Part shown: one piece after another, positions 523-34,593 of the stretch
How positions within the stretch are numbered: the first letter of the stretch is position 1
Layout of the letters: every line of letters starts with the position of its first letter
From: Selaginella moellendorffii
Taxonomy: Eukaryota; Plantae; Lycopodiophyta
Assembly: GCF_000143415.4 (NCBI RefSeq)
Contig: NW_003314272.1
Span: 1,496,374 to 1,560,373 of the forward strand
Direction of reading: 5' to 3'
DNA: 64,000 bases
The notes under the pieces: generated by a model
Told to the model about the DNA's origin: nothing
The model's input: only the letters and a program-made list of their open reading frames with translations
The model's database searches: none
Position numbers and translations under genes: made by a program

Positions 523-4231
<3,709 letters not shown>

Positions 4232-4352
4232 GAGGTTCATATTTTTCCTGTTCATCACTTACTGTTTTCGTGATTCTACTCGTTCCAGACAACGAAGTAG
4301 ACAAGCTCCAACCATGGATAACAGGCTTGAATCTAATGATCTACGATGGTTG

Positions 4353-6314
4353 CTAGCTATAAATGCTGGCCATGATCGAGCAAGCTCCAGCCACGCTGCT
4401 ACTTCCATCACGATTTAGCAGCGCATCAAACACTACCTTCGCGATAGCTGCATCCTTTCGTTTCCAGCACGCCCCTAGCAAAGTCATCCAAGTCACAGCA
4501 TCCGCCTCGCAAGGCATCGCGCTCGCCATCTCTAGCGCACCTCGCACATCATCGGCTCTCCCAAGCACATCGATAACGCAATGGTAGTGCTCTATCCCCG
4601 GAGTGATCCCATACTTGGTGCGCATTGCCGCGAAGAGAAGCTTGGCCTCCTCGAGCTTACCGGCGTGGTTGCAAGCCGTGAGGATGGACAGGAGCGTGGC
4701 CGAGCTCGGCTCTATCCCTCCGGCCTCCATCTCCCGGTAGAGCTCGAGCACCCGAGTAGCGTCACCTTTCCTGCTGTAGCCGGCCATCAGGGCGGTCCAG
4801 GTGATGGTCGAGGTGCTTCCGGAGAGCTGGGAGTCGAAAACTTGTTGGGCATCGTCGAGGCTGCCACACTTCGCGTAGAAATCCACCACGCAAGTCGCTA
4901 GAACCGAATCGGGCTTCTCGAGTAGACCGAGCCGGCAAACTCTGGCGTGGAAAGCTTTACCGGTGGAGAGAGCCACCGCAGCACCGCAGGCCTTGAACGC
5001 GCACAGAAAGCTCCGGGAGTTTGGCCGACCGAGCTGGTTTCGCTGTAGCTCTAGCTCCATCTCTGGAAACAACTCTAGCACCAGTTCTGGATCCCCGTTC
5101 TCAGCGTAGCCGAGCAGCAGCGCGTTCCAGAGAGCCAAGGACGTGCGCTGGAGTTGGTCCATCGCATCGAAAATTCTCTGGGCATCCGCCATGCTTCCAC
5201 AGTTGGCGTAGAGATCCACCAGCGACGTGGCGACGAAGATGTTGGAGCAGTGTCCCCCCGCGAGAGCTTGAGAGTGTAGAGCCATAGCTCTTTGGAGAGT
5301 AGCCTCGTCCGGCTTCGCTGTGGATCGCGCCGCTAGAGCAGCGCAAGCTTTCAATGCCGCGACGAAAGCCTGAGCGTTTGGCACCACCCCTTTACGTTGC
5401 ATGTCCTGGAAAAACTCGAGAGCCAGCTCCGGCTCGCCGTTCTCGGCATAGCCGAGCACCAGCGACGTCCACGAGACGACGTCGTTGCGAGGAATCGCCT
5501 GGAACACTCTGTGCGCATCGGCCATACTCGCGAAGCTCGAGTACATGTCGATCAAGCTGCTTCCAACGAAAACGTTGGACTCGCAGCCACTCTCCCGAGC
5601 TCGGGCGTGAAGAGCCATCCCGGTCTCTAGAGCAAGAGTTCTTTGCCGTGGAAGACGAGTGGAAGCCTTCACTGCCGCTACAAAGCTCTGAGAGTTCGCA
5701 TTGGAGCAGCGCTGAAAGAGCTGCAAAGCTTGCTCTTCCCGGAAGTTATCAGCGTAGCTCTGGATCATCGCGTTCCACGACACCACGTCCGGGTTTTCCA
5801 TCCCCTCGAAGACGCTTCTAGCATCTGCCAAGCTTCCCAGCCTTCCATACACCGCTACCAGCGTGTTGAGCACGTAGATATCCCCGCCATAGCCAGAGCT
5901 CACTGCCAGAGCGTGGAGAGCCATGGCTCTCTCCAATCCCCCCATAGCTCCATCAACTCTCCTGGATCCATTTCCACCGCAAGCTTTGAGAGCCACGACC
6001 AAGGTCCTGGCATCCGGAAGAAATCCCCGAGCTCGCATGGATTCCAGGCACTCCAAGGCCGCGGAGGACTCGCCATTTCCCACATACCCCAGCATGAGAG
6101 AATTCCACGACACCACCGTGTGGGATTCCATCCTCTGGAAGAGCGCCCGCGCCTCCAGCGTGCTGCCCAGCCTGCCATACGCGGCCACCAGCGTGTTGCC
6201 CAGGTAGACGCTCGAGGAATCTAGCTGCTTGCCCCCGGCGGCCGCGAGCGCATGGATTTCCCTCACCTGTTGTAGATCTCTGGACGACTTGAGAGCGGCG
6301 ATCCATGATCTCAC
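4353..6314 (-). CDS. PLS-class PPR protein, intronless, partial E-type C-terminus
   Basis: 653-aa ORF with VVSWNSLMLGY, VVDFYAKCGSLDDAQQVFD and EHYHCVIDVLGRA...WMTLLGAC motifs. Confidence 0.95.
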   Translation of the reverse strand: MRSWIAALKSSRDLQQVREIHALAAAGGKQLDSSSVYLGNTLVAAYGRLGSTLEARALFQRMESHTVVSWNSLMLGYVGNGESSAALECLESMRARGFLPDARTLVVALKACGGNGSRRVDGAMGGLERAMALHALAVSSGYGGDIYVLNTLVAVYGRLGSLADARSVFEGMENPDVVSWNAMIQSYADNFREEQALQLFQRCSNANSQSFVAAVKASTRLPRQRTLALETGMALHARARESGCESNVFVGSSLIDMYSSFASMADAHRVFQAIPRNDVVSWTSLVLGYAENGEPELALEFFQDMQRKGVVPNAQAFVAALKACAALAARSTAKPDEATLQRAMALHSQALAGGHCSNIFVATSLVDLYANCGSMADAQRIFDAMDQLQRTSLALWNALLLGYAENGDPELVLELFPEMELELQRNQLGRPNSRSFLCAFKACGAAVALSTGKAFHARVCRLGLLEKPDSVLATCVVDFYAKCGSLDDAQQVFDSQLSGSTSTITWTALMAGYSRKGDATRVLELYREMEAGGIEPSSATLLSILTACNHAGKLEEAKLLFAAMRTKYGITPGIEHYHCVIDVLGRADDVRGALEMASAMPCEADAVTWMTLLGACWKRKDAAIAKVVFDALLNRDGSSSVAGACSIMASIYS

Positions 6315-6510
6315 CTTGTGCCGCTCCGGATCTGCGGTAGCGGCGTGGAGGAGCGCCAGAAATCTCCTGGAGAATTTCGAGGATTCCTTTTTCCCTCTAT
6401 TTCTTCCTTTTGCTTAAACCCTAACCCCATACTCATAAAGAGTTAAGGGGAGAAAGCTGGCAAACTTTCTAGTTTAAACAAGTAGGCAAACTTCCGCTTC
6501 TTGTTCGTAC

Positions 6511-7288
6511 TCACCTCCTCGTCTCGTCGGAGGTCCCCTGGATCAAAAAACTTAGTTTCGCACACTTCACCGTCAAACTTGCACTGCTCGATGTCTTAGA
6601 CCGTCTCGACACCCTTGGGAATCTCCATCTCCTCCGCACATCGAACGGGAACATTGTACCGCAGCAGCACTTTGCACAAGCGAATACCTGCATCGTTTGT
6701 TCCTTTAAGTATGAGCAGCTTGCAGTGAAAGCATATGCAACGAACCTTTCAGCTTGTTTTGTTACCCTACGGGACTTGTCGCAGTAGCTCTGGAAGCCGA
6801 ATTCGTCATAGTTGGATTCCACCAGGAGCAAGCAGAGTACAAACTCGTCCGGCTTACTGGTCCCGGCATAGATATCATCAACCTATCAACAACAAGAATT
6901 TGTAATGTAAGAAAGGAACAGTAGCTCACCATAGGCAGCGTAGCTCGTTACATAAGCAATGGAAAGCTCCTCAAAAACAAAGCCTTGAAGCACCTCGTAT
7001 TCACGCAACGCACTCTGCATGAAGAGCTCCAGGTCTTTCAGTTTCATCATTGTAAGAGCCAGAGTGAATTAAGCCTGGACTTCTACACTGCAAAAGTTGA
7101 GGTAGTAATCTAGGAACGAAGAACTCTTAGCCGGTTTAAAATGTAGAAGCGCCCAGGATATATCCTGCCCTCATGATTTGCCTTGCGTGATTCTTAAGAG
7201 GCATAGGAGGTTGGTATTGTTTAGCGATTTCTGGACTTTCTTCAAGAATCTTTCTTGGTTCAAAATCGGTAAGTAATCAGACCAGAGC
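6511..7288 (-). pseudogene. Degenerate gene fragment of unknown family; 6645-7288 is duplicated at 46214-46859
   Basis: Minus-strand frame LWSDYLPILNQERFLKK...MMKLKDLELFMQSALREYEVLQGF with in-frame stops and a GT-AG intron at about 6883-6929; a close copy lies after the LTR nest. Confidence 0.55.
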
Positions 7289-7289
7289 G

Positions 7290-8031
7290 GAGGAAGTGCT
7301 CGAGGCCACCAAACAAGAGGCTGCGAGATCCAAAGACGCTGAAAGTAAGAAGGTGCAAGAGCTCGAGAAGGAAGCCGAGGCTATGGCATCAAACTTTCAA
7401 GCAGAGCTCGCGAAGGTCCAAGGTGTGGCGAGCTCTCTGGAGGAAAAACTGGACGAAGCAGCCCGACTCATTTCTGAGCAGGAGAAGACGATCTCGCGAA
7501 TGCAGGAGAGCGAGGCCCAGCAGCGAGATGGCTACGCATCGGAGACCAAGTCGCTCCTCGCCAAGCTAAGCGCGATGAGCGAAGAGTTTTCCAAGGAAAA
7601 GCAGCTGCTGGATAATGAGGTAACTCTTGATTGGTCGTCTTCTTTCCTTCTAATACTTTGTGATGGACGCCAGATATCTAGTGTCAAAGGCGAGAGAGAG
7701 GATCTTCGTAAGAAGCTGAGTGAGATCCACGTAAATGGAGCGTTTGCCAGAGTCAGCCGTTGAAGAAGTCGAGGTAAGGAACCATACTTCTACAGTTTTC
7801 TCTCCTTCTTCCTCGCTTGCTGCTAAGACATCGATTTTCATCTTCGTCACAGATGAGAAGTATCTCCAGAGATTTGAGCTCTCAAGGCAACGCCGAGGAG
7901 GAGGAAAGGAGCGGCTTCTTCCGCGGGAGTTGTGGAGGAGGAGACGAGCAGTGGCAAGGACAAAGTGGTGGGAAAGCAGGGCAAGGCTTCCTCCGGGTTC
8001 CTGGGAGCAACTAGTGTCGCGGTTTCTGTGA
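7290..8031 (+). CDS. Coiled-coil protein exons, apparently 5'-truncated
   Basis: E/K/A/Q-rich heptad ORF 7296-7619 followed by short GT-AG introns (7620-7673 and about 7774-7852). No upstream ATG; it begins immediately after the duplicated segment. Confidence 0.5.
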
Positions 8032-8200
8032 GCTCCTTCTTCGTCGGAGTACTGGTGGACAGGAAACTATTTTGAGAGAGAGGAGAAAGAAAAAGTATAT
8101 ATTTTTTCTTATCTTTGCGGCTTATAGGCTTCTATTCATCAAACAAATCTGGAAACCCTGGGATCCAACTATAAATACTTTTGACAAAAATTCCCATGAA

Positions 8201-8956
8201 TCAGCAAGCCTGTATTTCTGGCAGGTCTGCCAGAAATCCCTCAATATCAAGAAACACATCGTTGAATTCTTGAGGTTGCCCCCAGCAACTGGTTTGCACA
8301 TCTCCACCTTGAACCCCACCAACAAACTCCTGACTAACTTGATCAGCAAACACTCCATCGCTAAGCTCGCTAGTTTGAGCAAACACTTCTTGCACACAGT
8401 CACCAACAGGCCCTTGACCCAAGCCTGGCAGAAGCTTCCAGTTTTGATCAAAACCCTCGTGAGAGAAAGGTTGGGCACAATCACTAACACCATGACTTTG
8501 CTCCCAATAAATAGTTTGATCAAAACCCGCAACACAGTCACCCATAACTTGAGATGATTCGCCTACAAATTCTTCTTGGACGACTGGAGCGATCTTGTCT
8601 CCCCCATGGCTCTTTAAAGTTCTCTTATTTCCACCAGTGGGCGATTGCGATACGTCCCTTACCTTGCCACCTTGTGTCCATTTTCCCTTGCACGACCTAC
8701 AAGCGTAGCGCGGCTGGTCACGGTTGCCAGTACTCTTCTCGTTGTTGTAGTAATCGAACCGCGTGTTGTAAGATTGGCACCTTGGGCACTGGTACACGTT
8801 GTCCGGAAGGTCGTGGTACTCCCACACGCCGTACAAGTTTTGATCCCTCACCTCCTCGGCTGTGAGCTTGCAAGCCCTCTCGCTTCTCAGTCGACGCTTC
8901 TTTGTCAGCACCATGATACCATCGTCTTCTCTACTTCTCTTGCTTCCTCTCGCCAT
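8201..8956 (-). CDS. Divergent Dof-type C2C2 zinc-finger protein, intronless
   Basis: CPRCQSYNTRFDYYNN...QPRYACRSCKGKWTQGG matches the Dof core (CPRC..NTKFCYYNN..QPR..C..C..WT.GG); basic N-terminal KKRR; acidic C-terminus. Confidence 0.85.
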   Translation of the reverse strand: MARGSKRSREDDGIMVLTKKRRLRSERACKLTAEEVRDQNLYGVWEYHDLPDNVYQCPRCQSYNTRFDYYNNEKSTGNRDQPRYACRSCKGKWTQGGKVRDVSQSPTGGNKRTLKSHGGDKIAPVVQEEFVGESSQVMGDCVAGFDQTIYWEQSHGVSDCAQPFSHEGFDQNWKLLPGLGQGPVGDCVQEVFAQTSELSDGVFADQVSQEFVGGVQGGDVQTSCWGQPQEFNDVFLDIEGFLADLPEIQAC

Positions 8957-8987
8957 AGCTCGTAAAGGACCCCAAAGGACTTGACCT

Positions 8988-8999
8988 TATTTATATATG
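8988..8999 (-). promoter_or_regulatory. Putative TATA box of the Dof-like gene
   Basis: TATATAAATAA on the minus strand about 35 bp upstream of the ATG at 8956. Confidence 0.5.
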
Positions 9000-9049
9000 C
9001 ACTAAAGTAAAGGCTGGGTTAGCTTAAACAGCGTAGATTCCCACTAATC

Positions 9050-9960
9050 CTGTGCGGTTTAAGGTAAGAATATCAGTCCAGAGCGCTGAAAGATGGAAGG
9101 AGCGATCAAGGTATGCGGCATCCACATCGCAGAGGGCAAGAAGGACAGAGTCTGCCGAGAAGCCACTTATGCGCAAGTATTCTCATCACAATGTATGGCA
9201 AATGGCGCAGAGTTTGGCTGTAAATACAATCAAGGCGCTAAAGGTTGATGATGGAAAAATGGTGAAGCTCAGGATCTATCTGTCGGCATTTCCATGCACG
9301 ATGTCCAGAGCGACGAGCTGTGGCTGTGACACAGATGCCTTTGTCAGCACCTTGTTGAAGATGGAAGTGCCGTGTTTGACAGGCGTTCATTCCTCCGAGC
9401 TCCGACTATGATCCAGGCCTACACTGAAAAAACGGCGAGCCACGCATTGCTCTCGATTTGTTTTCACGCATGAGAACTATTTACTGTCAGCCATCCTTGA
9501 ACGATTGTGGCTGCGTTGAAGGCCTGGTCGCTCCTGGCAGCCGAAGGAAGATAGCATACTGGATGCGACTGAGAAGAAACGCGTGATCAAGTTTGAGTCG
9601 GTGAAAATCCGAGCGGTTTTCATTCGTATGTGTGCCGAGCCCGTGCCGAGTGTGCACGCTCGCGGAGTGTTCGACAGGGCACTGGATTTTTCGACTGCGT
9701 CATGGAACAGTTTGATGCTTGGATACGGAGCACACGGGCTTGGTTCTCGAGTCGAGCTGTTTCCATTCATGGAACGATCCGGGGTTTTCTAAGCTTTGTG
9801 GCTGCGTTGAAAGCTTGCGCTAGTTTGGATAGGCAAACTTGTCAAACTCCGTGCTTTAGAAGCTGGCATGGCTATCGCTTTGGAACTCTTCTTTCGGACG
9901 GAGCTGAAAGGAGTCACGAGTGCTCATCCTCTCAACATGGTGACTTGTGAGGCAAACTCT
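9050..9960 (+). pseudogene. Degenerate PPR gene remnants
   Basis: Fragments such as ASWNSLMLGYGAHG and SFVAALKACASL in broken frames. Confidence 0.6.
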
Positions 9961-10096
9961 TATTCCTGCTTTCCAGGAAATGATCGAAGACTCGTCTGGC
10001 GGAGCCAAACGTAGAAGAACTTGACAAGGTAAGAAACACTTCTTAGTTTTCTCCTCTTCAGAAATGGATTTCCCCTGTTGTCACAGATCTACAGAG

Positions 10097-11586
10097 GGAA
10101 GAAATGCATAATACAGCACCCCTCACTCTTATGTGGTTGCCCCTTTGCCACGCTCACTCCTCGCTTCTTCCGTGGCGCGCTTAGTCACGCCCAGCTCTGC
10201 ACCCTAAAAGTTTAACGACTAACTCTAAATTAGTAACGTTGAACTTTAATTAGTAGATGTTGTTAACGGATATGTTAACGACTATAATTTTATAATTAGC
10301 CAGTGAATGAGCGGCTATAATTTATAAGTATATAACCTACGATTGGTTTAGGTCTTTCCTCATTGTGTTTTATGTTTGTGCTCCTTATATTTTCTTTCTT
10401 ATTTTATTCATTCTCTTTAGTATTATGGCTAGATTGGAATATGTAGATCATGCTCAAGATAGTATTCTTTCTTTTTCTGATCTTATTGAGAGAACTAATA
10501 GTAAGGTAAATTCTTTTAGTTTTTGTATTATGATTGGTCTTCTTCCACAAGAGAGAGAATGTGAAAAATGCCATCATAATCGAGGTTGTAAAGATGGTTT
10601 AAAGTGGAATTGTAAAAATTGCAATACCACAAGATCTCTTAGAACTAATACATGGTTTGCAAATAGTAATCTCACATTTGCTCAAATGCTTAGAGTGATA
10701 TATTGTTGGTGCATTAAAATGCCACAAGATCAAGCTCATATTGAGTGTAGTATTAAAAGTGAGCATACGACAACAAATTAGTACAACTTTTGTCGTGATA
10801 TTTGTGTTATCACATTACAACGAGGTAGTCAAAAGATTGGTGGTCCAGGAAGAATTGTAGAAATTAATGAAAGTAAGTTTGGTAAGCGGAAATATAATCG
10901 TGGTAGAAGAGTAGAAGGTCAATGGGTCTTTGGAGGAATTGAACGTGATTCAGATCGAATGTTTATGGTTCCGGTAGCAGATTGTACTGCACAAACTTTA
11001 ACTGATATATTATATACCCAAGTAAGTTTTATTTCTATTATTATTCTTAACTAATAATTATAATTAATTTGTTAGGAACAATTATTTATAGTGATTGTTG
11101 GGCTGGTTATGATTCAGAGTGGTTGAATCAATTGAACTTCACTCATTATATAGTCAACCACTCCCAGAATTTTGTTGATCCCGTGACTGGAGTTCATACA
11201 AATCGTATTGAATCAACATGGGATGCAGTGAAAAGATCCCTTCCTCGCTATGGTACAACAAAAGGATTATACAGCTCTTACTTTCAAGAATATATTTGGA
11301 GAAAAATATATATTGAAAGAAAGGAAGCTGCATTTAATATTCTATGCAGTCATATTAAGCTATACAATCAAGATAATGCTGTTATAGTAGAATAAATAAT
11401 ATATTTGATTTTGTACTTTTAAATACTTAAAAATAGTTGAAAATAATATACTAGAACAATCTTTAATTTATAGTGATGAGGTGGCATGCGCATGTAAGCA
11501 ATGAGGTGGCGTGCAAATCCAGATAAGCAAATGGGGCCCACCCTAAATAAGGGGGGGGGGGGTGTGCTGTATTGTGCATTCTACCC
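10097..11586 (+). mobile_element. Merlin-superfamily DNA transposon (IS1595/ISXO2-like DDE), full length but defective
   Basis: 8-bp TSD CTACAGAG at 10089-10096 and 11587-11594. Imperfect TIRs beginning GG (GGAAGAAATGCATAATACAGCACCCC vs reverse complement GGGTAGAATGCACAATACAGCACACC). AT-rich body with an internal transposase. Confidence 0.9.
10425..11395 (+). pseudogene. Merlin/ISXO2-type transposase with N-terminal zinc ribbon and one intron (11022-11075)
   Basis: CEKC...CKNC; IGGPGRIVEINESKFGKRKYNRGRRVEGQWVFGGIER; IIYSDCWAGY; VNHSQNFVDPVTGVHTNRIESTW. Lesions: TAG at 10779 where W is expected, first catalytic D read as N (VEINES), and a phase mismatch at the intron. Confidence 0.9.
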
Positions 11587-13105
11587 CTACAGAGATTGTG
11601 ATACTAGGGTTTTCAAGGCGGCTTCTCACGGAGGAGGCAACCACTGTCGCTTCACTTTAAGATATCCTATATTTTGTGCTTTTAATTCCATGTCCGCAAG
11701 TTACAAAAGTTCCGATTGCAATCTACTTGCCAACATTTATGAGGAGCTCAGAGGAATTTCGGGGGGTAGAACTCAAGAAAAGACACAGCAATCTTAGAGG
11801 AATTTCGGCAAGTGAAGACTGAGCAGTTAGGAAAAAAACTAAACTACTCTTTTTTCAAGGAGATCAAACTTTCCAAAAGCACAGGCCTTAATCACGACCT
11901 TTAGTGCTTTTGCAATGTTGTTTTGATAACAAAAAGAAGATTGGTGCGATGGTATTGCCAGTGGTCACTATCCGGGTCTCTTGTAGGTGCCAGAAAAACA
12001 TGGAAACTTGACAACAAAGCTAGTCACTAAAATGCTAGTTATGCTATTACAATCATTTCTACTTGTCACTAATACATGTTTTTGGAGGGTCTTGCTGGAG
12101 GCATGAGACCACTGGGACAACTGAAGAAAAGAATGAGAGAACAAGGAGCAAGAACATTGAAAATAAAATCACCACCCTAGAATGTAATTAACAGCATCCA
12201 GACTTGGAATGTGTGATTCCACCAGTACTACAACATACTTTTGCCCTGTCCCAAAGGGGAGCTACAGCTGTGACAACACTTTCATGTAAGCAAACTTGTA
12301 GGGATGGTAGTGGATATATTTTAAAATATTAAAATATTAATATATTTAAAATATGGATATTTTAGGAATGTTTGGATATTTTAGGATATTCTACCATCGA
12401 AAAGTTGTTATTCATTTAAATTAATTTTTATATTTATAATTTATAAAATTTTAAAACCATTTTTAGTATATTCTTTTTTATTCTATCATCTAATGGTTGA
12501 TATACAATAAGATTAATCTTGTGTTTATAAATTGCAAACATGATTATAATTATAAATTTTATTTAATTAATTAGATTAATAAATAAGAATAACACTACTA
12601 TTAAGAAAATCAAGCATTGTTACATGTAATGTGTAGCAATGTTTTTTACAGAATATAGATCTAGAGAGCATATACTTAGAATATATCCACCTCTAAAGAA
12701 GATAAGCAAATTAAGCAATATTTTAGTTTGTGGTTTGAGTATATTCTAACATAACATAATCAACTGTGTTTTTAATCCTTATTTTACTTTTGGATAAAGT
12801 TCAACACCCCCTCAATCGGAGAACTAAAATGGTGCCAAGGACTGACTAGAACACCCTCATCATCAGGCATTTCTGCTGCCTATCCTCAAGCACCACCATG
12901 CTAGATGGATTGCTGGAGTACATTGCCAGCATTTGCTAGGCACAGCAAATCTACGAGGGCAAGGACCCTTCTAACTATATGAAATCTTTGGTGATTGTAC
13001 AAACCAATCATGGAGAATCCATGAAGAAATTTGGTCCTCCCTCACATTAGATGCCCATATTTAGCAAAAGCTCCTAATTTGTAAATATACTTGAAAATAT
13101 TATAT

Positions 13106-13512: not shown

Positions 13513-15510
13513 ATGGCAGATGAACAATCTCCTCCTTTGACTCTGGAGCAATAATTGGTACAATTGTTTGATGCTATGTACATGCAATTGAACAATCAAC
13601 CTTAGTTGATGGCGGCATTCACGGCACATGGTACAACTCCTCTTGATCTTGGTGCCAATCCTCGCGTTTGGCCGGAGTTCTTTTATGGGAATCCTAGGGA
13701 TGATGTGTACTATTGGTTCAATCACTTCACGGTGATTACCACATATCATTCTTGGGATGATGTTTGACATTTGCGTGAGTTTCCCATGTGTCTCCAAGGG
13801 ATGGCATTGCAATGGTACAATAGTTCGAGTGTAGCCATTCATGGGGATTGGAGTGTTCTCCTAGACGTCTTCAAACATGCTTTCGAACATGCTGACGATT
13901 GTGATGATGCCTTCCAACAATTGCATCATCTTTGCCAAGGGTCATCTGAGTCGGTGATGCAATTTGGCATTTGTTTCTGAAACCTTTTGCTTCGTGCGGA
14001 GCCAAATATGTCGAAGTGGATCAAGCTAGGAATGTTGTGGCCAACACTTCGTCAAGATCTTGTCGAATTTGTGTATGCACTTGCTCCCGCCACCCTTGAC
14101 GATGCTCTTTGCTTGGCGCAACGTTATGAAACGTTGCATCTTCCACTTCTCGCTACCTGTCCTTCAACTCCCTTTCCTATGGGTGATAGTCCTGTTCCAA
14201 TGAAGGTTGATGCTACTGTTGCTCGAGTCCAAGGACAAGGGCAAAGATGTGGTCATGGCCGTGATGTTTGTTGTTGGGCGTGTGATGAAGTTGGTCATAC
14301 TTATCGGTGTTGTCGGCATTTTCTGGATTGGTGAATTTTATTCTTTATAGCAACAGCCGTACACATGCATGTGCACAGGATGAGGTGGACCTAGTTGTGC
14401 ATGTGGGCGATCTCGAGCTTGAGTTGCAGTCATTATAGGTGGTGCCGAGTCAAGCTTTTAACCTCATTCTTGGTATGGATTGGTTGCAGCACAATCATGC
14501 CAAGTGTGACTTTGAGGCTTCTCCCCTTTGTCTCATACTTCCTTATGTATCATCCATTCCTCTCACTTTTGTACCTCTTTGTCCCCCTACTTCTACCTCT
14601 ACTTCTACCTCTGCTTCCATTACTTTTTTTCCCCCACTATTTCCTCCTATGTTTCCGTCTTGTTTTGCTCTTCCCTTTTCCGATCCTTTCGACAATCTTT
14701 GTGTTGTAGTGGTTGATCGGCTCATGCAAGAGTATTTTAATCTCTTTGAATTTGACCTATTGTTTGGGGCCAAGATTGCCACATGTCATCTGATTCCAAC
14801 CAGAGATGCTCGTCCAATCAAGGTTTTTGTTCATTGTTGGTCACCCAAGGAGATCAAGATTTAATGTGCAAAAGTCAAGGAGATGTCGGAGAAGGGTGTT
14901 ATTCGGAAGTCACAGAGTCCTTGGGCATGTGAACCTCATCTTGTGACAAAACCTGATGGGAGTATTTGTTTTTGCATCGACTATCGTCCATTAAATGAAG
15001 CGACGATCTCGGATGTGTACCCTTTTCCTCACACTATTGATCTCTTAGATTGTCTGGGGCAAAGTCGTTGGTTCACCAAGCTAGATCTGGCTTATGGGTA
15101 CTGGCAAGTACCGATGGCCGAAGAAGATATTCCTAAGACTGCTTTTCGTACACCATTTGGTTTGTACAAGTTCTTGGTGATGCAGTTTGGTTTGAACAAT
15201 GCTCCAGCAACTTTCTAGCGGATGATGGATGAGGTTCTTTGCGATATGCCAGAGGTGACTATTGACTTCATTAATGATGTCTTGATCTACTTGAAGGAGA
15301 CGTGGGAGGAGCATGTTCGTGATGTTTGTAAAGTGTTGGATCGGCTACGCGATGTTGGTTTAAAGCTGAAGTGGTCAAAGTGCGTGTTTGGGTCCAAGGA
15401 CACAACTTATCTTGGGTACCGTATTTCTCGTGAGGGTTTGCAAGTTGATTCTGACAAACTTGTGGCTATTCTAAAGTTCTCTACTCTAAAGTGTGTGAAT
15501 GATGTGTAGC
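13513..15510 (+). pseudogene. Element A gag / protease remnant / reverse transcriptase
   Basis: Gag GMALQWY and CWACDEVGH knuckle; LILGMDWL; SPWACEPHLVTKPDGSICFCIDYRPLN; KLDLAYGYWQV; KTAFRTPFGLY; multiple stops. Confidence 0.9.
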
Positions 15511-18500
15511 TGTCGCAAATGTGACTTCAAGTATTGAAAGTTACCTATCGGCTAGTCCTTATGAACACTCTTTCCTTACTGCCACAACGGTAGAAAGTCA
15601 GTATTGCTGGTTTCCTTTATCAACCCCTCTTGTTCAAGTGTTAGTAAACTGGACTTTGCATCTGTACTTGGCCGGATGAGTATAAGGACGTATAAAAGAT
15701 GGCATCAACTGTCGCTAATGGAGCCTCAACTCTCTTGAAGACATTGTTCCTCAGATTCTTAACTAGAATCAAGCCGTGTGCCTTGGCAAAGTAGTTGCGG
15801 GGCACAAAACACCCCACGACCTGCTGGCTTTCTTCAGTCGAAGTGTCATTACTTATCGGGATCTGTACGTGTTTATTCAGCCAAGCATACTTGGCCCGGC
15901 TTTTTAGTTCTCTTTTGCTCTGTCTTGCATTTGCTTGACAAGAACCCTCGCGTATTGAGACTAATCCCTCAATATCGCTGGATGATAGCTTACCGTGTCT
16001 GCCAAACACCCTCGCTATCATGCCTTTTGTGTTAGTCTCATTTCGGTCCCAAATACTATTTATGAAAAGTGTCTAGATCCGCTCATTTGGCATATCTACG
16101 AAATGTAGAGATTGGTCTAAACACAATGGTGTTCGTCCCATGTCCAAATTTGCAATTTAGCGCCATTCCGTATTTAGTTAGTTTTGAGCTTGTCTTAGAG
16201 ACTAACTTCTGATACTAAGGGAGGCTTGGGGTGAAAGCCCAAACCGTGAAATGTGAAAGGGGTGTGTTCCTCAAAGGAGGGAGGGGGGGGGGGGGGGGGG
16301 TTCCAAATGTATAGTAAGGATAGTGGGTAGGTCAGGCATGGCTGACCAACTTGAGGCACAATCTAGTTCCCGCTTGCATGCCTGTCGTTGTTCTGCGTCC
16401 AGCTTGGGTCTAAGCCCAAGTTCCATTCCATGCTAGTTGGTGGAGTACCCATATTTTCACATTAGGCTACTGGTATGCCGAAATAGCGCTAGACTCCATT
16501 TGGCTTCGTTTTACATACTGGTCTTAGAATTGGGATGTTGGTTGCTCTAGGATTGTTCCAAGTCGCTCTGGGCTCTTGTTCCTTCGCTCCTTGGGCTGTA
16601 TGCTCGGGAGTTGCTCCGTGGTCTGGTTCCATCACTCCTTAACTCCATGCTTGGGAGTTTGGCACCGTTCCTTTGTTCAGTGGCCCAAGGCTTTGAACCT
16701 CAGGTTCCACACCACTATCCTCTAGACACGTGGCATACGACACATGGCATATGAAGGGTTTAGGTTCCACTTCGTGGTGTTATCCTATAGTAAATCACCA
16801 TAGGATAAAAAGTAAAAACCACATGCGTTATATTTGGTATCAGAGGATGAGTCTCAGTGAGTACTATCCAATGAGATTGAGCAACTAGTCTCATTGCATA
16901 CATAGAGATGAAACGATGATCCGAGTGGGTACATGTTTGGGTGCAAAGGCTTCACAATTGTTCCTTGGGTATGGATTTGATTACCTTGTTGTACCTTATG
17001 ATGTGAGTTTGTTCTTGGGCTCATAAGGGGGATTGAGTTGTTCCGTTTGTACAAGTTTTTGCTTGGGCTTGTGAGTGAGGTACATTAGTAACTCATTGTT
17101 ATACTTTAAGTTGGCAGGATGAATGTTAGCCTATTGGTGGTTCCATGAGTTATTCCATGTATTGTGGGTGAAAGTAAACCTTCCCTGGGTTTACTATGAG
17201 TGGCAAATAGGCTGGTCCGTAGCTATTTAGCACGGCACTAGTCGATCCTTCCTAGGCATGATTACAAGTGAATCAACCAAGACTGTAAGGGTTAGTCTAT
17301 TGGTTCAGGTAGTCATTGCCGTGCTCTCTCATAAACTTTTCTTGGATTAGACTAAAGGCAGTGCAAACGCAAGTTTGAGGTTTAGTCAAAGATGAGACCG
17401 AAAAGACTTGGGTTGCAATGCTTAATTCTTTTCTAAGGAACCTTGCTATTGTTCTTGAATAGCTTGGTGTTGGATTAGTTTTGAGTTTGTTCAAAAAGAG
17501 AGTGGCATGAGTTTGTCCGCGTTGTGAACAAAAGTTAGTGGTGTTTAGTGTTATAAATCTCTATCGGTGGAGTGTGGCATTTATGTTACATTTTGTCAAA
17601 TTGAGTTGACACTTGATACTCACATAAACCTTTGTAGCAGTGACATGGGCGTTGCTTGTGGTATTGCTCAATTAATGATCAAGTCATTGTGATGTTATAT
17701 CATATCCATGTGATAATGAGTAATGTGTTGACAAAGTTGTTTGGTTAAATGATGATCAACCCCAAAGTGGTTGATAGTGAAGCTAATCTATTTGAATGAA
17801 GTAGCATTGTAGTAGCTTTGACTAGATTCTTGATGGTAATCCATTATGTTAAGTTTAAGTTGGTATCTTGTTTTTTCAAGGGTTTGCCCATAAAATGTTG
17901 AAAAAGGGTTGTAGCATTCACTTGCTATAGTTTGTTAGTTGATCCGTTAGCACTTGGAGTAGATTGTTGGATGGAGAAGGTGTGTAGTTGAGGCATTGAC
18001 ATTGCTAGCATTTGTGTTAGTGGAAGTGGCATTGTTATTTCGAGTGATGAGGAATTTTTCTTTAAAGCTTATTTTTCCATGTCATTTTTCATTATTAGTG
18101 TTTTGGCTTCACATTGGATCTTGAAGGTGGTTGAAAAAGAGTGTTAGTGCAATATGGATATCCAAAGATATGGTCTTTGTGATCAAACCTTAGATATTCA
18201 TTTTGCAATTTGTGGATGTTGGTGTTAGATGTCGGATATATAGGCAAAGATGTTTGATGCTTAAGCATATTATTAGATCATGAGAATTTGTGTTGAGGTG
18301 AACCTATGTGAAGTAGTAGGTAGGAGGAAGTTAGTTGAGTTTTGAAAGTTTGCATTCCTAGACTGAGAGTTATTCTTTCTCTAAGATGGAAAATTTTTCA
18401 CAAATTTTCTTAGACTTTTCCAATAACTGATTTATTGATCATTTTGCCCAAAAACTTTTCCATTTTCGTAAGCCAATACAAAGTAGTGAAGGGGTTGGCT

Positions 18501-21500: not shown

Positions 21501-22735
21501 ATTTCTTATATAGTGTGATCACCGTGAACTTTTTCTAGAGTTGTTTCCTTGGTGGTGGTCTAGATTTGAGTATACATTGACAAGGACGTCGATCTTCCCT
21601 AGAGGGGGAGAGTGTTACGAATGTGACTTCAAGTATCAAAAGTTACTTGTTAGCCAGTCCTTACATACACTCTTTCTTTACTGCCACGACGGTAGGAGGT
21701 CGGTATTGCTAGTTTCCTTTATCATCCCCTCTTGTTCAAGTGTTAATAAACTAGACTTTGCATCTGTACTTGGCCGGATAAGCATAAGGATGGAATTCCT
21801 AAGTGTCTATTTAACCAAGCATATTTGGCCCAGCTTTTTAGTTCTTTTTTGCTCTATTTTGCATTAGCTTAACAAGAACACTCGCATATTGAGACTAGTC
21901 CCTTAATATCGCTGGATGATAGCTTACCGTGTCTGCCAAACACCCTTGCTATCATGCCCTTTGTGTTAGTCTTATTTTGGTCCCAAATGCTATTTATAGA
22001 AAGTGTCTAGATCCACTCATTTGGCATATCTACGAAATATAAAAATTAGCCTAAATATAATGGTGTTCGTCCCATGTCCAAATTCGCAATCTAGCGCCAT
22101 TCCATATTTATTAAGTTTTGAGCTTGTCCCAGAAACTAACTTCTAATACTAAGGGAGGTTTGGGGTGAAAGCCCAAAGCATGTGTTCCTCCAGGGGGGGG
22201 TTGTGGGGGGGATCCAAATATATAATAGGGATAGTGGGTAGGTCGGGCATGGCCGATCAACCTGAGGCATAGTCTAGCTCCTGCTTACATGCCTGTCCTT
22301 GTTCTGCGTCTGGCTTAGGTCTAAGCCCAAGTTTCATTCCATGCTAGCTAGTGGAGTACCCATATCCTCACGTTAGGCCACTGGTATGTCGAAATAGCAC
22401 CAAACTCCGTTTGGCTCCATTTTGCATGCTGGTCCTGGCATTGGGATGTTAGTTGCTCTAGAACTGTTCCAAGTTGCTCTAGGCTCCTGTCCTTCACTCC
22501 TTGGGCTATATGCTCGGGAGTTACTCCGTGGTCTAATTCCGTCATTCCTTGGCTCCATGCTTGGGAGTTTGGCACCATTCCTTCATTCAGTGGCCCAAGG
22601 AGGTTCCACACCACTATCCTCTAGACACGTGGCATGTGATATGTACGTAGCACATGGAGGGTTTAGGTTCTGCTTCATAGGGTTATCCTATGGTAAATCA
22701 CTATAGGATAAAGGGTAAAAACCACATGCACTACA
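15511..22735 (+). mobile_element. Element B: non-coding (LARD-like) LTR retroelement inserted in the pol of A
   Basis: LTRs 15511-16832 and 21613-22735; PBS TGGTATCAGAG at about 16835; PPT AGAGGGGGAGAG at 21601-21612; decayed 5-bp TSD GTAGC/ACAAC (ancestral GCAGC inferred); no recognisable pol ORF internally. Confidence 0.85.
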
Positions 22736-24587: not shown

Positions 24588-25726
24588 TGTAAGGAATTGA
24601 CTCCCCGAGATGTTGTAGGCTAAAGGATCCCTGAAAGCTTGACCAAAATGACAAAGAGTTCATCGGATGGGACCGAGTCGAAGATCGAGTCCAAGACCAA
24701 CTCTGAGACCGAGTTCAAGATAGAGTCCGGGATCGAGCCGAGGCCGAATCGGAGACCGAGATCGAGACCGAGTTCGAGACGGAGTCCAAGATCCAAATCG
24801 GGTCCAAGTCCGAGTCCGAGGTCGAGTCCGAGATCAGGTCCGAGATTGAGTCCGAGATCGAGTCCGAGACCGAATCCGAAGTCGGGTCCGAGATCGAGTC
24901 CGAGATCGATTCTGAGACTAAGTCCACATACTAATACAGCTCAAGGGGTGAAAGCCCAAAACATGTGTCTCCCAGGGGGGGGGGGGGGAGGCTGCAGGGG
25001 GTTCCAAAAGTATAGTAGGGATAGTGAGGTCTAGGAACCAGTCTTGAAGGAACTCTCCAGTGGTGCTTCCAAACTGACTTGAGGTTGAGATTGGGGCCGG
25101 GGGGCCTTGGGTGGGAGTGAGCATGGGCTTGAGTGGTGCCGGAGGGGCCACCCAGGGAAGTGCTCAAGAGCAGCTCCCACTCCCGAAAGGGAAACCGACT
25201 GCGGTGCTCCCGGCTCATGTGGAGTGGTGCCCCACTTGAGTACCTTGTGGCTCATTGGTCCTCGCCCTTCCTTGGGGCTTGGGCCTTCCCTTCGGGATGG
25301 AAGTGGGGGGGTAGAGGTACCCATACCGGGCCGTTAGGCCACGGTGTTTCACCCCGACGTCCCGAAGCAAGTGCTGCACCCAAGGCTTGGGATTTAGAGG
25401 GTCCCATGATCAAGTCTTGTGGTACCAAGGGGTGTTAGGAATCTGGAGGCTTGGTGTGCTTGGCTGCTTGTTCCTGCAGAGAGTGTAGCCAAACCTTAAG
25501 TCTAGTCTAACCTGGGGAGGGGGATTAGGAGAGATTTGGGAATCTGTAGATGGATGGCTAACACTCCATTGCTCGTGCAGTGAGTAGCTGAAACCAAGTA
25601 GGACCAAGTAGGAGCTGGTACCATAGGCGGGAACCTTGGCGAGGGAACTTAGCACGAGCCAAGGCAGAGTTGGTCGGATAGATGAGGTAAGCTGGCAAAT
25701 TGGAAAGGAAAAATTTATGACTTACA
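24588..25726 (+). repeat. 5' LTR of element C with internal GAGTCCGAGATC-type repeats and a poly-G tract
   Basis: Close direct repeat of 44523-45686. Confidence 0.95.
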
Positions 25727-27936: not shown

Positions 27937-28658
27937 CAGCAGTTTTGGACTTGGTTAATCCACAGACCCGTAAGGTCTTATTTGTGAGGCACTAGCTCAC
28001 TGGAATACACTTCTTGCATTCCTGTCCTACTCAAAAGGACTATTTTCACAAGTGTTACTCCGGCACTTGATTTTGTTCTCTAGGGGCAACCTTTGCCCCT
28101 TAGGACTACTTGTCCATGTGATGAGAACACCAACTCATCCACTTAATACACCCCCAACTCCTGGGGTTGTTCCAGCATTTATTAGAGGTAGCCCCGGCTA
28201 CCTTTTCAAGGACTTGAGTCCTCTTCCGTATTTGACCTCCCACGGTCATTACTTCTGGTCTCACATTCATGAGCACCAACCTCAACTATATGAGGAAAAT
28301 CTTGTGACTCCTTTATTGCTTTGGAGTCTTTATCTTTCCCGTGATCCCAACTGTAGTTGTTTACCACAACTACATTAGCCAGTTTGCTAAGTCAAATGCT
28401 CATCTGGATCACATCCTCAACTCTTTGAGGAAAACCATATATTGTTCCCAAGATCCCAAAGTCGTTCCATTATTGGCCCTTTTCTATCCACCACATTGTG
28501 CCCAAGTTCACGCATGAACTCGAGTGGAGAGCCATGTCCTCTCGACATGCTACTCCTCAAGGATAGGCCCACTCCTAGGACCATCCGATGCCAACATCAA
28601 TGGTGATATACTTGAGCACCAATAAAAGTCAGACTAAGGAACAGCTCCGATACCAAGT

Positions 28659-30481
28659 TGTAGGCGACTAATTTTTCCATTCTACTTTAGTCACTTAACC
28701 ACACCTCCGACCACTTGGAGGAGTCTCATTCACAACCTCCATCAGTCCAATTCAGGACTTGGGACTTGCTAGCCCCAAGAATGGCATCCATGCCACTCAA
28801 CACTTGCACCTGGTCCAGGTGCTCCACGTGTCCGGTCCCAAGACCGACACCCAAAGGTGCCACTGACATCTCGGCCCGTTACGCTAAGGCCATGCCCATT
28901 CACCTTTGCTGCACTAGTGGTCCAATACCACTTGCATCACCATCCCGTCTCTCCAAGACTAGGCCATCTGTCCACGAGTGGTCATCCTAGATCCACACCT
29001 TAGCATCCTTAGGATGCCCACAGACCTGGGGAATCGCCTTCCCCAAAGTCCCTTTGTCAGTTCCTACCAAGTCCCTTTCTGCCCCTGGCCGTGTTTGCCA
29101 ACACTGCCACTGGATCGAGGCCCACAGGCCCGACCACTAAGTCCCACGGTCCTCTGGGACTTCCTCACCACATGACTGTGTCCTTGGTCACCACCCCAGA
29201 GGACTGCTCCTCTTCCTTTCCACAGTCTGGGCCTTTGGGACAACATTTCGGAACACCGTGGCCTTACGCGAGCCACCTGGGTACTCTCCCCACCTATCGC
29301 CTTTAGGTGCTCTAGCCATGGGCTTAGAGCGAGGTTCCGTTGAGCCACACCTGGTATCCAAATAGGTAGTGCCACCCACACTTGGACTGGGAGCATCGGC
29401 CAGTCGATCCCCCGGGGGAACTAGAGCCGGCTCTTGAACACTTCACCAAGCTACCCCGCTTGTCGGTCCATGTTCACCCTAGTCTTGGACTTCCCAGTGG
29501 TCAGCTCATCACCCAACACTGGGTCCGGCCTTCCTGGGCCAAACTGGCCTTTCCTGGCCAAACTGGCTCCACTGCAGTCCTCCCCCTACTATACTTTTGG
29601 AGCTCACCAAACCCCCCAGGGTCTGGGAGACGAACGCTTTGGGCTTTCACCCTCTCAGGCTCCGGACTCGGACTCGGACTCGGACTCGGACTCGGACTCG
29701 GATTCGGACTTGGACTCGGGCTCGGGCTCGGTCTCGGCCTCGGCCTCGGTCTCGGTCTCGGTCCCGATCTCGGTCTCGGTCTCAGTCTCGGTCCCGGTCT
29801 CGGTCTCGACTTCGGACTCCATCTCGGACTCCATCTCGGACTCCATCTCGGGTCCATCTCGGGTCCATCTCGGACTCCATCTCGGACTCCATCTTGGGTC
29901 CATCTCGGACTCCATCTCGGACTCCATCTTGGGTCCATCTCGGACTCCATCTCAGACTCCATCTCGGACTCCATCTCGGGTCCATCTCGGACTCCACTTC
30001 GGACTCCAACTCGGGTCCATCTCGGATCCACCTCGGACTCCACTTCGGACTCCACTTCGGACTCCATCTCGGACTCCATTTCGGACTCCAACTCGGGTCC
30101 ATCTCGGATCCACCTCGGACTCCACTTCGGACTCCATCTCGGACTCCATTTCGGACTCCAACTCGGGTCCATCTCGGATCCACCTCGGACTCCACTTCGG
30201 ACTCCATCTCGGACTCCATTTCGGACTCCAACTCGGGTCCATCTCGGACACTCCCACGTGTCATGTGTTGGTCCTTTTGGGTCCCTTTTTGGAGCCTCGC
30301 CTTTTGTTCGCTTCGTGCTCGTTCCTCGAGCACTTCGTTGGGAGTTCCACTCCCGCTCTTGACTTTTCAAGTCGGAGCTTTTGGTCCAAACGTGTTACGC
30401 TCGTTTGGCTCTCGCTTCAGCCACTACCACGTGGCACCCTTTCCGGCTCCACTTTGGGGCCTAGGGATTTTGTGTCTCACA
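28659..30481 (-). repeat. D LTR copy 1 (1823 bp) with TCGGAC / CCATCTCGGACT minisatellite
   Basis: TG...CA ends on the minus strand; repeat tract at about 29660-30250. Confidence 0.9.
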
Positions 30482-33400
30482 ACTCCACCACCCATAGACG
30501 AAGTTCGATGTCCTCATCGAACGGTAAACCATTTTGTAAAGTAACACTCGCATGTGTTACCATTTCCATCCTTGGCACCTAGCCAATATTTGTCAATGGT
30601 TTGACATTGAAGGCTCACCATGCCTTTTGCATATGCCTCAATGGTTTGACACCAAAGGCTCACCATGCCTTGCCTATCCTCTAAGGAGGGTAGTCTCTCC
30701 AACTTAGAGACTGATTGGACCACATATAGTGGTTCTCTCCTTTTATTGGTTTAGTTCTCACTAAACCTTTTAGAGACCCTTCGCTAAGTCAATCCTACTA
30801 CTCCTTCTTGAGTAGTCTCAATTTCCATCTATTGAATGTTTGCACCTTGGAACTTTTACTCTTTTGACTTTTTGGAAGTCAATTTCCTAGGTGTCTCCAA
30901 CACCTTGCATTGCACAGATTGTACAACTCCACTTCCCTATCCTAGGAAGTTCATTACTTGAGGGCACCATCATCCTCTCTTCTATTTCATGCCACCTTGG
31001 GCACTAAGTTCCATTTATCACACTTTGTGCTAGGCTTGTCCACCGCCCTATCATTTGGCTACCTTACCGCTCCCTCCCTTGGAGCTTCCACTTTCGCCAA
31101 ATCGGAGCAATTCGGAATCCATCCTTGGAAACACACTTCCTTTCCCGCAATTTGTTAGCGTCCAACACATTAGTGTTCCTCGCCTAACTTTGTCACTTGG
31201 ATTCCTTCCCAGGGATTCCACGGCCCTATCTTGGCCACTCATCTTTTGCTCCTATCCGTTGATTGTTGCACCAAGCAACATCGAATCTCTACCTCCCTCC
31301 TTGAGGTATTCTTTTCATTCCATAGCAAAGGCTTTGCTTTGCCAAGACTAGGGTGTTCACCCATAGTAAGTCTCTTTTAGCATCTTCTGCTGTGGGCTCT
31401 ATCCTCGGCCCAACTTTGTGACCCTCTCATGGGTCTCTTTAGAGACTACTTTCCTTAGACACACTATGCCATCGCAATGACATAGCTCATTTCCCTAAGA
31501 TGCTTTTCCCACTTGGTCACCTTGACCAAGCCACACCATCATCAATAGTTCAAATCAACACTTTGAACTAGGAACCTTATTCCTTAACCCAAACAAGGAC
31601 CTTGTCCTTATTTAGCCACAAGATCACCTAGTGATCTCACCTCGGCACCTTAACAGGTTTGCCAATAGGTACTAGGTCTTCCAGACCTTTAACTTGTTAA
31701 CTATGACCCCGGGGGCATCCCCCACACTTGGCGGTGCGCCCAAGCCAGCCCTTCCGGCCAAGGGTCCATAGCAACTGAGATTAGGTGTCCCCATCTCACT
31801 CACCACGTCTTTGGTGCCACTTGCACCAAAGCGTTCAAGTTAGATATGCCGAGCTTTCACACTAAGCAATCTAACCGTGCATCACGACTCCGAGGCATCC
31901 CTCGCTTGGCGGTGTGCCCAAACCAGTCTCCCCACTAAGAGTCCATGACCACCGAAATATGAGTGTCCTCATATTCCAAACCATCACCACGCCCTAGTGA
32001 TTTGGGACTCGAACCCAAGCACTAGAGGGTCGGGACTCGAACCCAACCTCCGTATATGCATCTACGGACGGCATCACACAAGATGCCTGGCGTGACTCCC
32101 CACGCCGGTGCACCAACTTATTTTCAAAGCGCGCTATAGATCACAGCTTAGGAACCTAGTTCCTCCACACTGTCAAGTCCTCTCACTTGACATGTCTGTG
32201 ACCATGTATGGACTCCTCCATGCTCGGCCCCATGGCCCACCCTTTTTGGAGTTATCACCTTCAACTAGGGTATTTGTTCCCCCGATGTGCCAATCTCGCT
32301 TGGCAAGTCCTCCGACCACTGTAACATGGTTCCTGCATAAGCGTGAAAGTCCTTGACCATCGACTTTCGTTCAAAGCCCTCTCTTTGAACACTTGGGAAC
32401 TACTTCCCTAACCTTGATAGCCTTGCCTCATGGCAAGCTTCAAGACCATGCTTCTGCTGCGCCACTCTGATTTCGCGCATTCCATGAACCATTTACACTT
32501 GGCCTTTCTAGGTATTAAGCTACCTAGAATCGTCTTTGGGAACCTTGAAGGAACTCTGTCCCTCAGCTTGCTAAGGCCTCCCTTTTTGCAAGCCTTCCAA
32601 ATGCCACATAGTCTAACATAGACAATTCCATAGTTTAGACTCTCCATGGCATCACGGTTGCTAGCGGTAACACCCTCGAGCCCCCACTTGATTCTCCACT
32701 CCCAGCTGGCATAACCAACCTTGGTTATGCCCTTTGATTCCTACGGTTCGGTTCTATCCCTTTACTTCTGGCTTTTTGGCTTCACACTTTTCCTTTGGTC
32801 ATTCTCCTCCAGACCAGGAGGATAGCTTTGCACTTTCTATCATGCTTTAGCAAGTATTCTTAGGGATGAACCTACCCAATAGCCTAGGGAGTGGTTCCTC
32901 AATCCGGGTATGCTCACCTTATAATCCCACACACTGGGATTACATTGTTGCTTATGGGCCTTTACATGCCCATCACTAGCCTTGCCAAAATTCCATTTTT
33001 GGCTTTGTCCAACTCGGGTAGACAGTCCTCTCCTGTCTCCGCAACCTTGGACATTTGGATAGCACCTTCTATCCATCATTCGCTAGGGACTTAGTCCCTT
33101 GGGCTTTATCCATTACCCTCGCGACATCAAACACCACCTTCTGGTGTTCTAGAGTGTTCGGGTGTCCCAATGATGGCTTTCTTGACAATGAGTATTTCCT
33201 TTTATGACATTAACTTACTATATCGCAACACAAGCAACTTATCCCCCGTAAGGGTATATCCAACTTCCCTATGCTATTAAGAAGTCTTGGGTAGCTACCT
33301 TCTACCCGTTTAACCAGTTATTTTGCACCTCTTGCTTAGTTGCCTCATAGTTGTCAAGTCCTACAACTCATTGCTTGGTGCTTTCACACCGCCATCATTA

Positions 33401-34593
33401 TCTGGGTCACCACACTCCAACTGCATGCTCTGCAGCTTAGGCTATGTTATTCCCATTTCCATTGGGATTCCTTTGGCAAGGGGTTCTCATGAACCCACCA
33501 ACATAGCCTCAAGGTATCACACCTTGGCACATTTGGTGTCCCCACACCATCGGCTCCACGAGCCTACCTCTATGACATTTCCCCTTCGTGTCTAAGTCTT
33601 TGCCAAGACCAACACCGCTCTTTCTCATGCCAACCATCCGTTAGCACTGCACCATAGAGGTCACACACAACTTTATGTCAAAGTTGTTTTCTTCTAGGAA
33701 CACCTTTTCCCATAACTTTAGCATGGCATATTTTGCCATCGATGAGATACCCTCTGTTCTCATCCTTGGATCCTATGATCCCCCCCCATCCTTTGTGGGG
33801 TACAACACACCTCAGTCCAAATGCTTCCATCAGTCCTTTTAGGACCATCTGTTGACTCTACTTGAGTCATCCAGCAGTTTTGGACTTGGTTAATCCACAG
33901 ACCCGTAAGGTCTTATTTGTGAGGCACTAGCTCACTGGAATACACTTCTTGCATTCCTGTCCTACTCAAAAGGACTATTTTCACAAGTGTTACTCCGGCA
34001 CTTGATTTTGTTCTCTAGGGGCAACCTTTGCCCCTTAGGACTACTTGTCCATGTGATGAGAACACCAACTCATCCACTTAATACACCCCCAACTCCTGGG
34101 GTTGTTCCAGCATTTATTAGAGGTAGCCCCGGCTACCTTTTCAAGGACTTGAGTCCTCTTCCGTATTTGACCTCCCACGGTCATTACTTCTGGTCTCACA
34201 TTCATGAGCACCAACCTCAACTATATGAGGAAAATCTTGTGACTCCTTTATTGCTTTGGAGTCTTTATCTTTCCCGTGATCCCAACTGTAGTTGTTTACC
34301 ACAACTACATTAGCCAGTTTGCTAAGTCAAATGCTCATCTGGATCACATCCTCAACTCTTTGAGGAAAACCATATACTGTTCCCAAGATCCCAAAGTCGT
34401 TCCATTATTGGCCCTTTTCTATCCACCACATTGTGCCCAAGTTCACGCATGAACTCGAGTGGAGAGCCATGTCCTCTCGACATGCTACTCCTCAAGGATA
34501 GGCCCACTCCTAGGACCATCCGATGCCAACATCAATGGTGATATACTTGAGCACCAATAAAAGTCAGACTAAGGAACAGCTCCGATACCAAGT

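Follow-up and report, generated by a model that had tools for sequence, protein, structure and literature searches.

The question raised by this locus is whether a DNA transposon with a bacterial-type transposase, embedded in the genome of the lycophyte Selaginella moellendorffii, is intact, is new, and was retained in the lineage or acquired horizontally. The window analyzed here, the whole stretch of 64,000 nucleotides, begins at scaffold position 1496374, so that window position 10425 corresponds to 1506798. A preliminary description, made from the letters of the window alone, had proposed a full-length, intron-containing Merlin transposon that was novel for land plants. The element at 10097-11586 is regarded here, with a probability of about 93%, as a copy, no longer functional, of the S. 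moellendorffii Merlin family catalogued as Merlin-1_Smo. The name is taken from the statements of Lopes et al. rather than from an alignment to the consensus, and the copy is among the loci reported alongside Merlin-1_Smo.

Element structure and insertion site

The element spans 1490 bp on the forward strand (Table 1). Its outline is as originally proposed, with GG-initiated terminal inverted repeats (TIRs) and an exact 8-bp target-site duplication (TSD), CTACAGAG, abutting both ends; by chance, two 8-mers at a given pair of positions would match with a probability of 1.5e-5. The left terminus reads GGAAGAAATGCATAATACAGCAC... and the right terminus, in reverse complement, GGGTAGAATGCACAATACAGCAC.... 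The TIRs are approximately 26 nt long and imperfect, with one indel, and start with GGAAG at the left end and, in reverse complement, with GGGTAG at the right end. A GG start is common to all Merlin families (Lopes et al. 2021, PMC8101967). Within the window, the 16-nt core of the TIR was found only at the two ends of the element (0.06 matches expected), and neither further copies nor short TIR-sharing derivatives were found there.

Table 1. Features of the Merlin copy, in window coordinates
Feature	Position	Strand	Evidence
Left TSD copy, CTACAGAG	10089..10096	.	sequence; shared 8 letters in the run X1 empty-site contig
Merlin element, 1490 bp, decayed copy of the S. moellendorffii family	10097..11586	+	termini, TSD, transposase domain
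Left TIR, starts GGAAGAAATGCAT	10097..10122	+	inverted-repeat search; same terminus in three other copies
Exon 1, first part: 118 codons, N-terminal CxxC...CxxC cysteines	10425..10778	+	collinear with full-length Merlin transposases
Premature TAG for Trp codon TGG	10779..10781	+	most other copies TGG
Exon 1, second part: 80 codons, first catalytic motif VEI(D)ESKFGKRKYNRGRRVEGQWVFGGIER	10782..11021	+	translation, NCBIfam IS1595, alignment
AAT (Asn) for the first catalytic Asp	10866..10868	+	aligns to the VEIDES column
Predicted intron, 54 nt, GTAAGT donor, CTAAT at 11051-11055, TAG acceptor	11022..11075	+	sequence; homologues collinear without the intron
Exon 2 including stop, second DDE half; codon frame from 11075	11076..11395	+	open frame, PF12762, alignment
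Right TIR, reverse complement starts GGGTAGAATGCAC	11561..11586	-	inverted-repeat search
Right TSD copy, CTACAGAG	11587..11594	.	sequence; run X1 empty-site contig

A G+C content much lower than that of the neighboring genes had also been claimed for the element. The values are 0.34 for the element and 0.59 for the two PPR genes upstream, but the element is not alone in its low G+C: the adjoining 2 kb on the right are equally AT-rich (0.35), and the 2 kb on the left have 0.48. The insertion lies in unannotated DNA beside a decayed PPR fragment, and the annotation of the locus places no gene in the element region. PPR, NmrA and Dof genes adjoin the element on scaffold GL377576.1 (2.9 Mb), and the 843-aa PPR open reading frame at 523-3051 is the exact annotated product on that scaffold in GCA_000143415.2.

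The search for an empty site, which had been suggested at the outset, yielded one. A single contig of run X1 joins 10088 to 11587, skipping 1498 nt with 8 letters that fit both sides, and consists of flank, a single CTACAGAG, and flank, a precise empty site. The sample behind run X1 is not the one that matches the window, and in both flanks run X1 differs from the window at fixed positions. The depth of the empty-site contig, 332.9, equals the entire depth of run X1 over the right flank. In run X4, a 740-nt contig is identical to 10844-11583, including letters private to this copy; among the subset of contigs listed, none bridges a filled junction with at least 31 letters on each side. The insertion is thus polymorphic, being present in the reference haplotype and missing from another genotype or haplotype. 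An empty allele speaks for a genuine transposition of no great age and against a chimeric assembly; together with the plant scaffold and its genes it bears out the proposal of a true integration.

Transposase gene and intron

The transposase is distributed over three reading-frame pieces (10425-10778, 10782-11021 and 11075-11392), which were searched separately. Its classification as ISXO2-type is upheld by Pfam family PF12762 (DDE_Tnp_IS1595), which matches the exon-2 piece with E=5e-8 and 33.4 bits against a curated cut-off of 27, and by NCBIfam IS1595 (NF033547), which matches pieces 2 and 3, piece 2 weakly. Pfam gave no family for piece 1 or piece 2 alone; for piece 1 none appeared at E up to 1, an N-terminal zinc-ribbon domain included. 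In alignment, the three pieces tile Merlin transposases of 292-343 aa collinearly. Exon 2 carries an Asp at 11093-11095 (IYSDCW) and a Glu at 11210-11212 (NRIESTW), 38 residues apart; a spacing of about 36-38 residues is typical of the second D and the E in Merlin. At the level of the family, the catalytic D, D and E are found in VEIDES, IYSDCW and NRIESTW of sister copies.

Membership in the Merlin superfamily is supported by the IS1595-type DDE domain, the 8-bp TSD and the GG termini. By analogy with the superfamily, the transposase would bind the GG-initiated TIRs and excise the element by DDE cut-and-paste; a staggered 8-bp cut of the target would then be repaired into the 8-bp duplication. 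The transposase gene would comprise two exons, exon 1 coding for the cysteine-rich N-terminus and the first Asp, and exon 2 for the second Asp and the Glu.

The intron between them, already proposed from its GTAAG, CTAAT and TAG motifs, has a G+C content of 13% and contains stop codons, and its CTAAT lies 20 nt ahead of the acceptor. Short, AT-rich introns are typical of S. moellendorffii. In a sister copy with an open frame, the donor reads ...GAACCAG/GTAAGT and the acceptor ...GTTAG/GAACAAT, the phases fit, and the predicted junction product is ...YVEPG TIIYSDCW..., within a motif (PGT.I.SD.W.AY) that is uninterrupted in every aligned Merlin protein. A homologue from a metagenome contig (L005) lacks the intron and runs in one frame, collinearly, through the intron site. 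Coding is likewise continuous through the site in those Merlin copies of S. tamariscina and S. kraussiana that were read (...YVARGSIMFSDCW... and ...YVEKCSTIYSDCW...). The comparison supports the prediction of a spliceosomal GT..AG intron. Because the other Selaginella copies and L005 are continuous at the site, the intron is best read as a probable lineage-specific gain, at a CAG/G site, in the S. moellendorffii lineage; it would provide a small example of intron gain at a CAG/G proto-splice site within one genus.

The intron bears on the published picture of the family. The translations of Lopes et al. run past the donor into the intron, ending ...YVEPGKFYFYYYS; their CD-search found the domain to be C-terminally incomplete, and their S1 Table lists Merlin-1_Smo with a 'Partial' domain and no DDE (PMC8101967). 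Lopes et al. 2021 (PMC8101967) nowhere use the word 'intron'. With the second D and the E contributed by exon 2, the domain would be complete and not truncated, and the published 'truncated domain, no DDE' looks like an artefact of an overlooked short intron.

Previous records of the family and locus

The claim of novelty fails. According to Lopes et al. 2021, Repbase already contains an S. moellendorffii Merlin as Merlin-1_Smo, and Yuan and Wessler 2011, as cited there, reported Merlin in embryophytes (PMC8101967). By tblastn, Lopes et al. (PLoS One 16:e0251133) found uncontaminated Merlin in S. moellendorffii, S. kraussiana and S. tamariscina; most plant tblastn matches were contaminants, but for Selaginella there was no evidence of contamination (PMC8101967). 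Record NW_003314272.1:1506798-1507397 of their S2 Appendix (PMC8101967) covers exon 1 of the copy described here, and its protein agrees, letter by letter and with stop and VEINES included, with what 10425-11024 encodes. Both the family and the exact locus are therefore already known. The preliminary description had named, as the case that would remove novelty, a catalogued family widespread in land plants; the Merlin family is catalogued yet not widespread in land plants.

Compared with Merlin-1_Smo and the loci of Lopes et al., the present element is of the same species and the same family and is this very copy; the DNA is no different, and only the interpretation differs. New, on a modest scale, are the overlooked intron, its absence in copies read from two other Selaginella species, the open-frame sister copy, and the insertion polymorphism. 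As a discovery the locus carries little weight, the Selaginella Merlin having been catalogued since about 2011 and re-surveyed in 2021. Its residual value lies in the correction of the published 'truncated' reading and in the lead given by the sister copy.

Origin of the family

A HMMER search with exon 2 against 1.84 billion representative proteins gave 4347 matches, the best of which were 45-63% identical. The named ones among these best matches belong to Mytilus and a pseudoscorpion, the others come from metagenome or Logan contigs, and none is from a plant. The best of the unnamed matches lie on long ENA metagenome contigs, which are uninformative as to taxonomy. A separate homologue search with the exon-2 piece, confined to proteins within a length window, gave a single protein of 133 aa, a result with no bearing on full-length relatives. 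The Mytilus ISXO2-like proteins (XP_076106327.1) are about 300-345 aa long and have the same order of motifs with D/D/E in the same columns; pieces 2 and 3 are 59% and 53% identical to one such protein, and the N-terminal third approximately 30%. Their host belongs to another kingdom. Over 106 exon-2 residues, the S. tamariscina Merlin shows about 66% identity (hand count), and it has Selaginella-specific stretches, including YDSEWL..QLN..HY.VNHSQNFVDP, in common with the window copy; a related Merlin copy is also present in S. kraussiana. The Merlins of these two species belong to the same transposase lineage, and differ in that the copies read are without the S. moellendorffii intron.

As no relative nearer than the S. 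tamariscina Merlin was found, an old residence in the genus appears favored over a recent horizontal arrival, an interpretation that Lopes et al. suggest as well (PMC8101967). Of the two origins that had been left open, retention or horizontal acquisition, the comparison thus leans to the former and makes a recent transfer the less favored one. A recent transfer into S. moellendorffii from an animal or another eukaryote would account for the rarity of Merlin in land plants (PMC8101967), for animal proteins (Mytilus, pseudoscorpion) being the closest named ones in the library, and for copies that are fairly alike and include one polymorphic insertion. It is nevertheless considered improbable: the best library matches are only 45-63% identical over exon 2, whereas the S. 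tamariscina copy reaches about 66% with the shared stretch and S. kraussiana has a related copy. The element moreover has a short AT-rich intron of a kind typical of the host. Lopes et al. saw no sign of a recent horizontal transfer (PMC8101967).

A derivation from bacterial IS1595 or IS1016, by contamination or misassembly, has been rejected and is given practically no credence. The transposase domain is indeed common to bacterial IS1595 (PF12762, NF033547), and most plant tblastn matches in Lopes et al. were contaminants (PMC8101967). The bacterial elements, however, are prokaryotic and intron-less, whereas the window copy has neither a prokaryotic host nor an uninterrupted gene: its scaffold, 2.9 Mb long, carries PPR, NmrA and Dof genes, and its coding sequence is split by the predicted GT..AG intron. 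Further points against contamination are the approximately 110 loci in the assembly, the empty-site allele, relatives that are eukaryotic Merlins of 290-345 aa, and the explicit statement of Lopes et al. that none was evident for Selaginella (PMC8101967). The 8-bp duplication is a feature of bacterial IS1595/IS1016 as well.

Decay of the copy

The designation 'full-length' holds insofar as the termini and the coding segments are present, but the copy is a pseudogene that has lost 21 nt and 10 nt and whose frame is broken in three ways. Four lesions private to this copy were called against contigs of other copies from public runs and against three sister copies in the contig file of Lopes et al. 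(PMC8101967). At position 10780, within the premature TAG, A is replaced by G in 3646 of 4139 depth units of run X1, and sister copies read TNWYNFC. At 10866, in the codon of the first catalytic Asp, 4569 of the 4816 depth units in the same run carry G instead of A, which gives GAT.

A 21-nt in-frame deletion near 10575/10576 leaves CHHNRGC here versus CH(Q/R)PMRY(R/Q)SDNRGC elsewhere, as judged from loose contig ends at 10576 and one sister copy that carries the extra 21 nt. A 10-nt frameshifting deletion follows 11017, just 5' of the intron. The absent letters, ATATGTTGAA, are present after 11017 in 587 of 732 units of run X1 depth (one contig) and in one contig of run X11. Exon 1 of this copy measures 597 nt (phase 0) and exon 2 requires phase 1; once the missing 10 nt are restored, the phases of the two exons fit, an argument of arithmetic only.

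Both point lesions are G-to-A, and where copies differ from one another, C>T and G>A changes prevail, a pattern that would be expected of methylated, silenced repeats. In the history suggested by these differences, the copy would have inserted at CTACAGAG and decayed afterwards by the Trp-to-stop and Asp-to-Asn changes and the 21-nt and 10-nt deletions. The copy is dead, with its reading frame broken and its first catalytic Asp lost. Its transposase must come from another copy, and it could therefore be mobile only in trans.

Two further readings of this copy are rejected on the same lesions. That it is a domesticated host gene recalls the Merlin-derived domesticated genes of other taxa discussed by Lopes et al. 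(PMC8101967), and is almost certainly wrong in view of the in-frame stop, the frameshift and the lost catalytic Asp, as well as the retained TIRs and TSD, the absence of an annotated gene, and the absence of the insertion from another sample. That it is an autonomous, full-length and working element, as the presence of both termini and all coding segments might suggest, is dismissed with equal assurance: TAG interrupts the frame at 10779-10781, Asn stands at the first Asp, and the 10-nt deletion shifts exon 2, so that there is neither an intact triad nor an open frame.

Other copies in S. moellendorffii

The copy count called for at the outset is available from the file of Lopes et al., which holds 110 loci for S. 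moellendorffii, 60 for S. tamariscina and 16 for S. kraussiana (PMC8101967). By exact-string counts among the S. moellendorffii copies, the donor junction is preserved in 4, EIDES in 36 and SDCW in 27, which suggests that few copies retain intact motifs. Sister-copy sequences were taken from the supplementary file and translated by eye. Three other copies are flanked by 8-bp TSDs of their own, GAGGAGTC, GCCTACGC and AAGAATAA; one sister copy is without exon 2 (internal deletion), and another has several stops.

The open sister copy lies in NW_003314411.1:249986-252639. Its exon 1 is open, with a 218-aa translation given by Lopes et al. (PMC8101967), and its exon 2 differs from that of the window copy by only five substitutions, none of them creating a stop. 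By hand translation, the predicted spliced frame of this copy (approximately 250.7-252.2 kb) comprises about 315 codons and contains D, D and E. The conserved KRKYNRGR/FGGIER motifs of this copy are also altered, by R>W, R>H and G>R, and it may be crippled in consequence.

A wider reading is offered tentatively, the balance being against it: the family may have a complete, intron-split transposase, its intron gained after the split from the Merlins of S. tamariscina and S. kraussiana, with the open copy and the insertion polymorphism as possible marks of recent movement and perhaps of an autonomous element. Were such an element real, it would be the sole candidate among land plants for an active Merlin, and Selaginella would provide a plant-based Merlin system.

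Read joints were observed at 10496>11442, 10574>11458 and 10682>11409, and contig depth in the left subterminal region far exceeds that in the middle of the coding sequence. Joints and depth together point to the existence of internally deleted derivatives, contig depth alone being only suggestive.

Merlin homologues

A Merlin-type transposase on the metagenome contig L005 shares 50-54% identity with the catalytic half of the transposase encoded by the Merlin copy in the window. The two are collinear, and the metagenomic gene is read in a single frame without an intron at the site occupied by the 54-nt intron of the Selaginella moellendorffii gene. In one passage of the supplementary S. tamariscina contigs of Lopes et al. 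2021 (PMC8101967), the sequence TATGCATAATACTGCCCC lies downstream of the transposase stop. It is similar to the 16-nt core of the S. moellendorffii terminal inverted repeats, yet stands in forward orientation, and may belong to a second copy that is nested in this one or lies beside it.

Genomic neighborhood and other repeats

The left part of the window, from 523 to 8956, is GC-rich and densely packed with genes (see table). The NCBI annotation places no gene from 8956 to 13051. Close to the Merlin insertion, on its left, is an ORF at 9583-9792 whose translation (...SWNSLMLGYGAHGLG...) looks, by eye, like a decayed PPR repeat.

Coordinates of genes and repeat arrays in the window and of the transposase gene on L005
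Feature	Position	Strand	Location
PPR gene	523-3054	+	gene-dense stretch
NmrA-like gene	3149-4231		gene-dense stretch
PPR gene, second	about 4353-7050	-	gene-dense stretch
Dof zinc-finger gene	8201-8956	-	gene-dense stretch
12-nt-period arrays	29648-29983; 35600-35935; 41412-41747		one per tandem unit
Merlin-type transposase	L005:5591-6372		ENA ERZ25073694 contig ctg130146, 104-kb metagenome contig

Further to the right, 27937-42230 consists of three units repeated in tandem, each about 5.8-5.96 kb long, with 100% identity across 300-nt blocks and an internal array of 12-nt period in every unit. The triplication is flanked on both sides by direct repeats (24588-25274 and 44523-45234; 91-98% identity, spacing 19.9 kb), which may represent a long-terminal-repeat pair. 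Another direct-repeat pair is located at 15866-16165 and 21800-22099 (89% identity, spacing 5.9 kb). It is adjoined by an ORF at 14883-15218 that on visual inspection resembles a reverse transcriptase, and together the pair and the ORF probably constitute another LTR retrotransposon.
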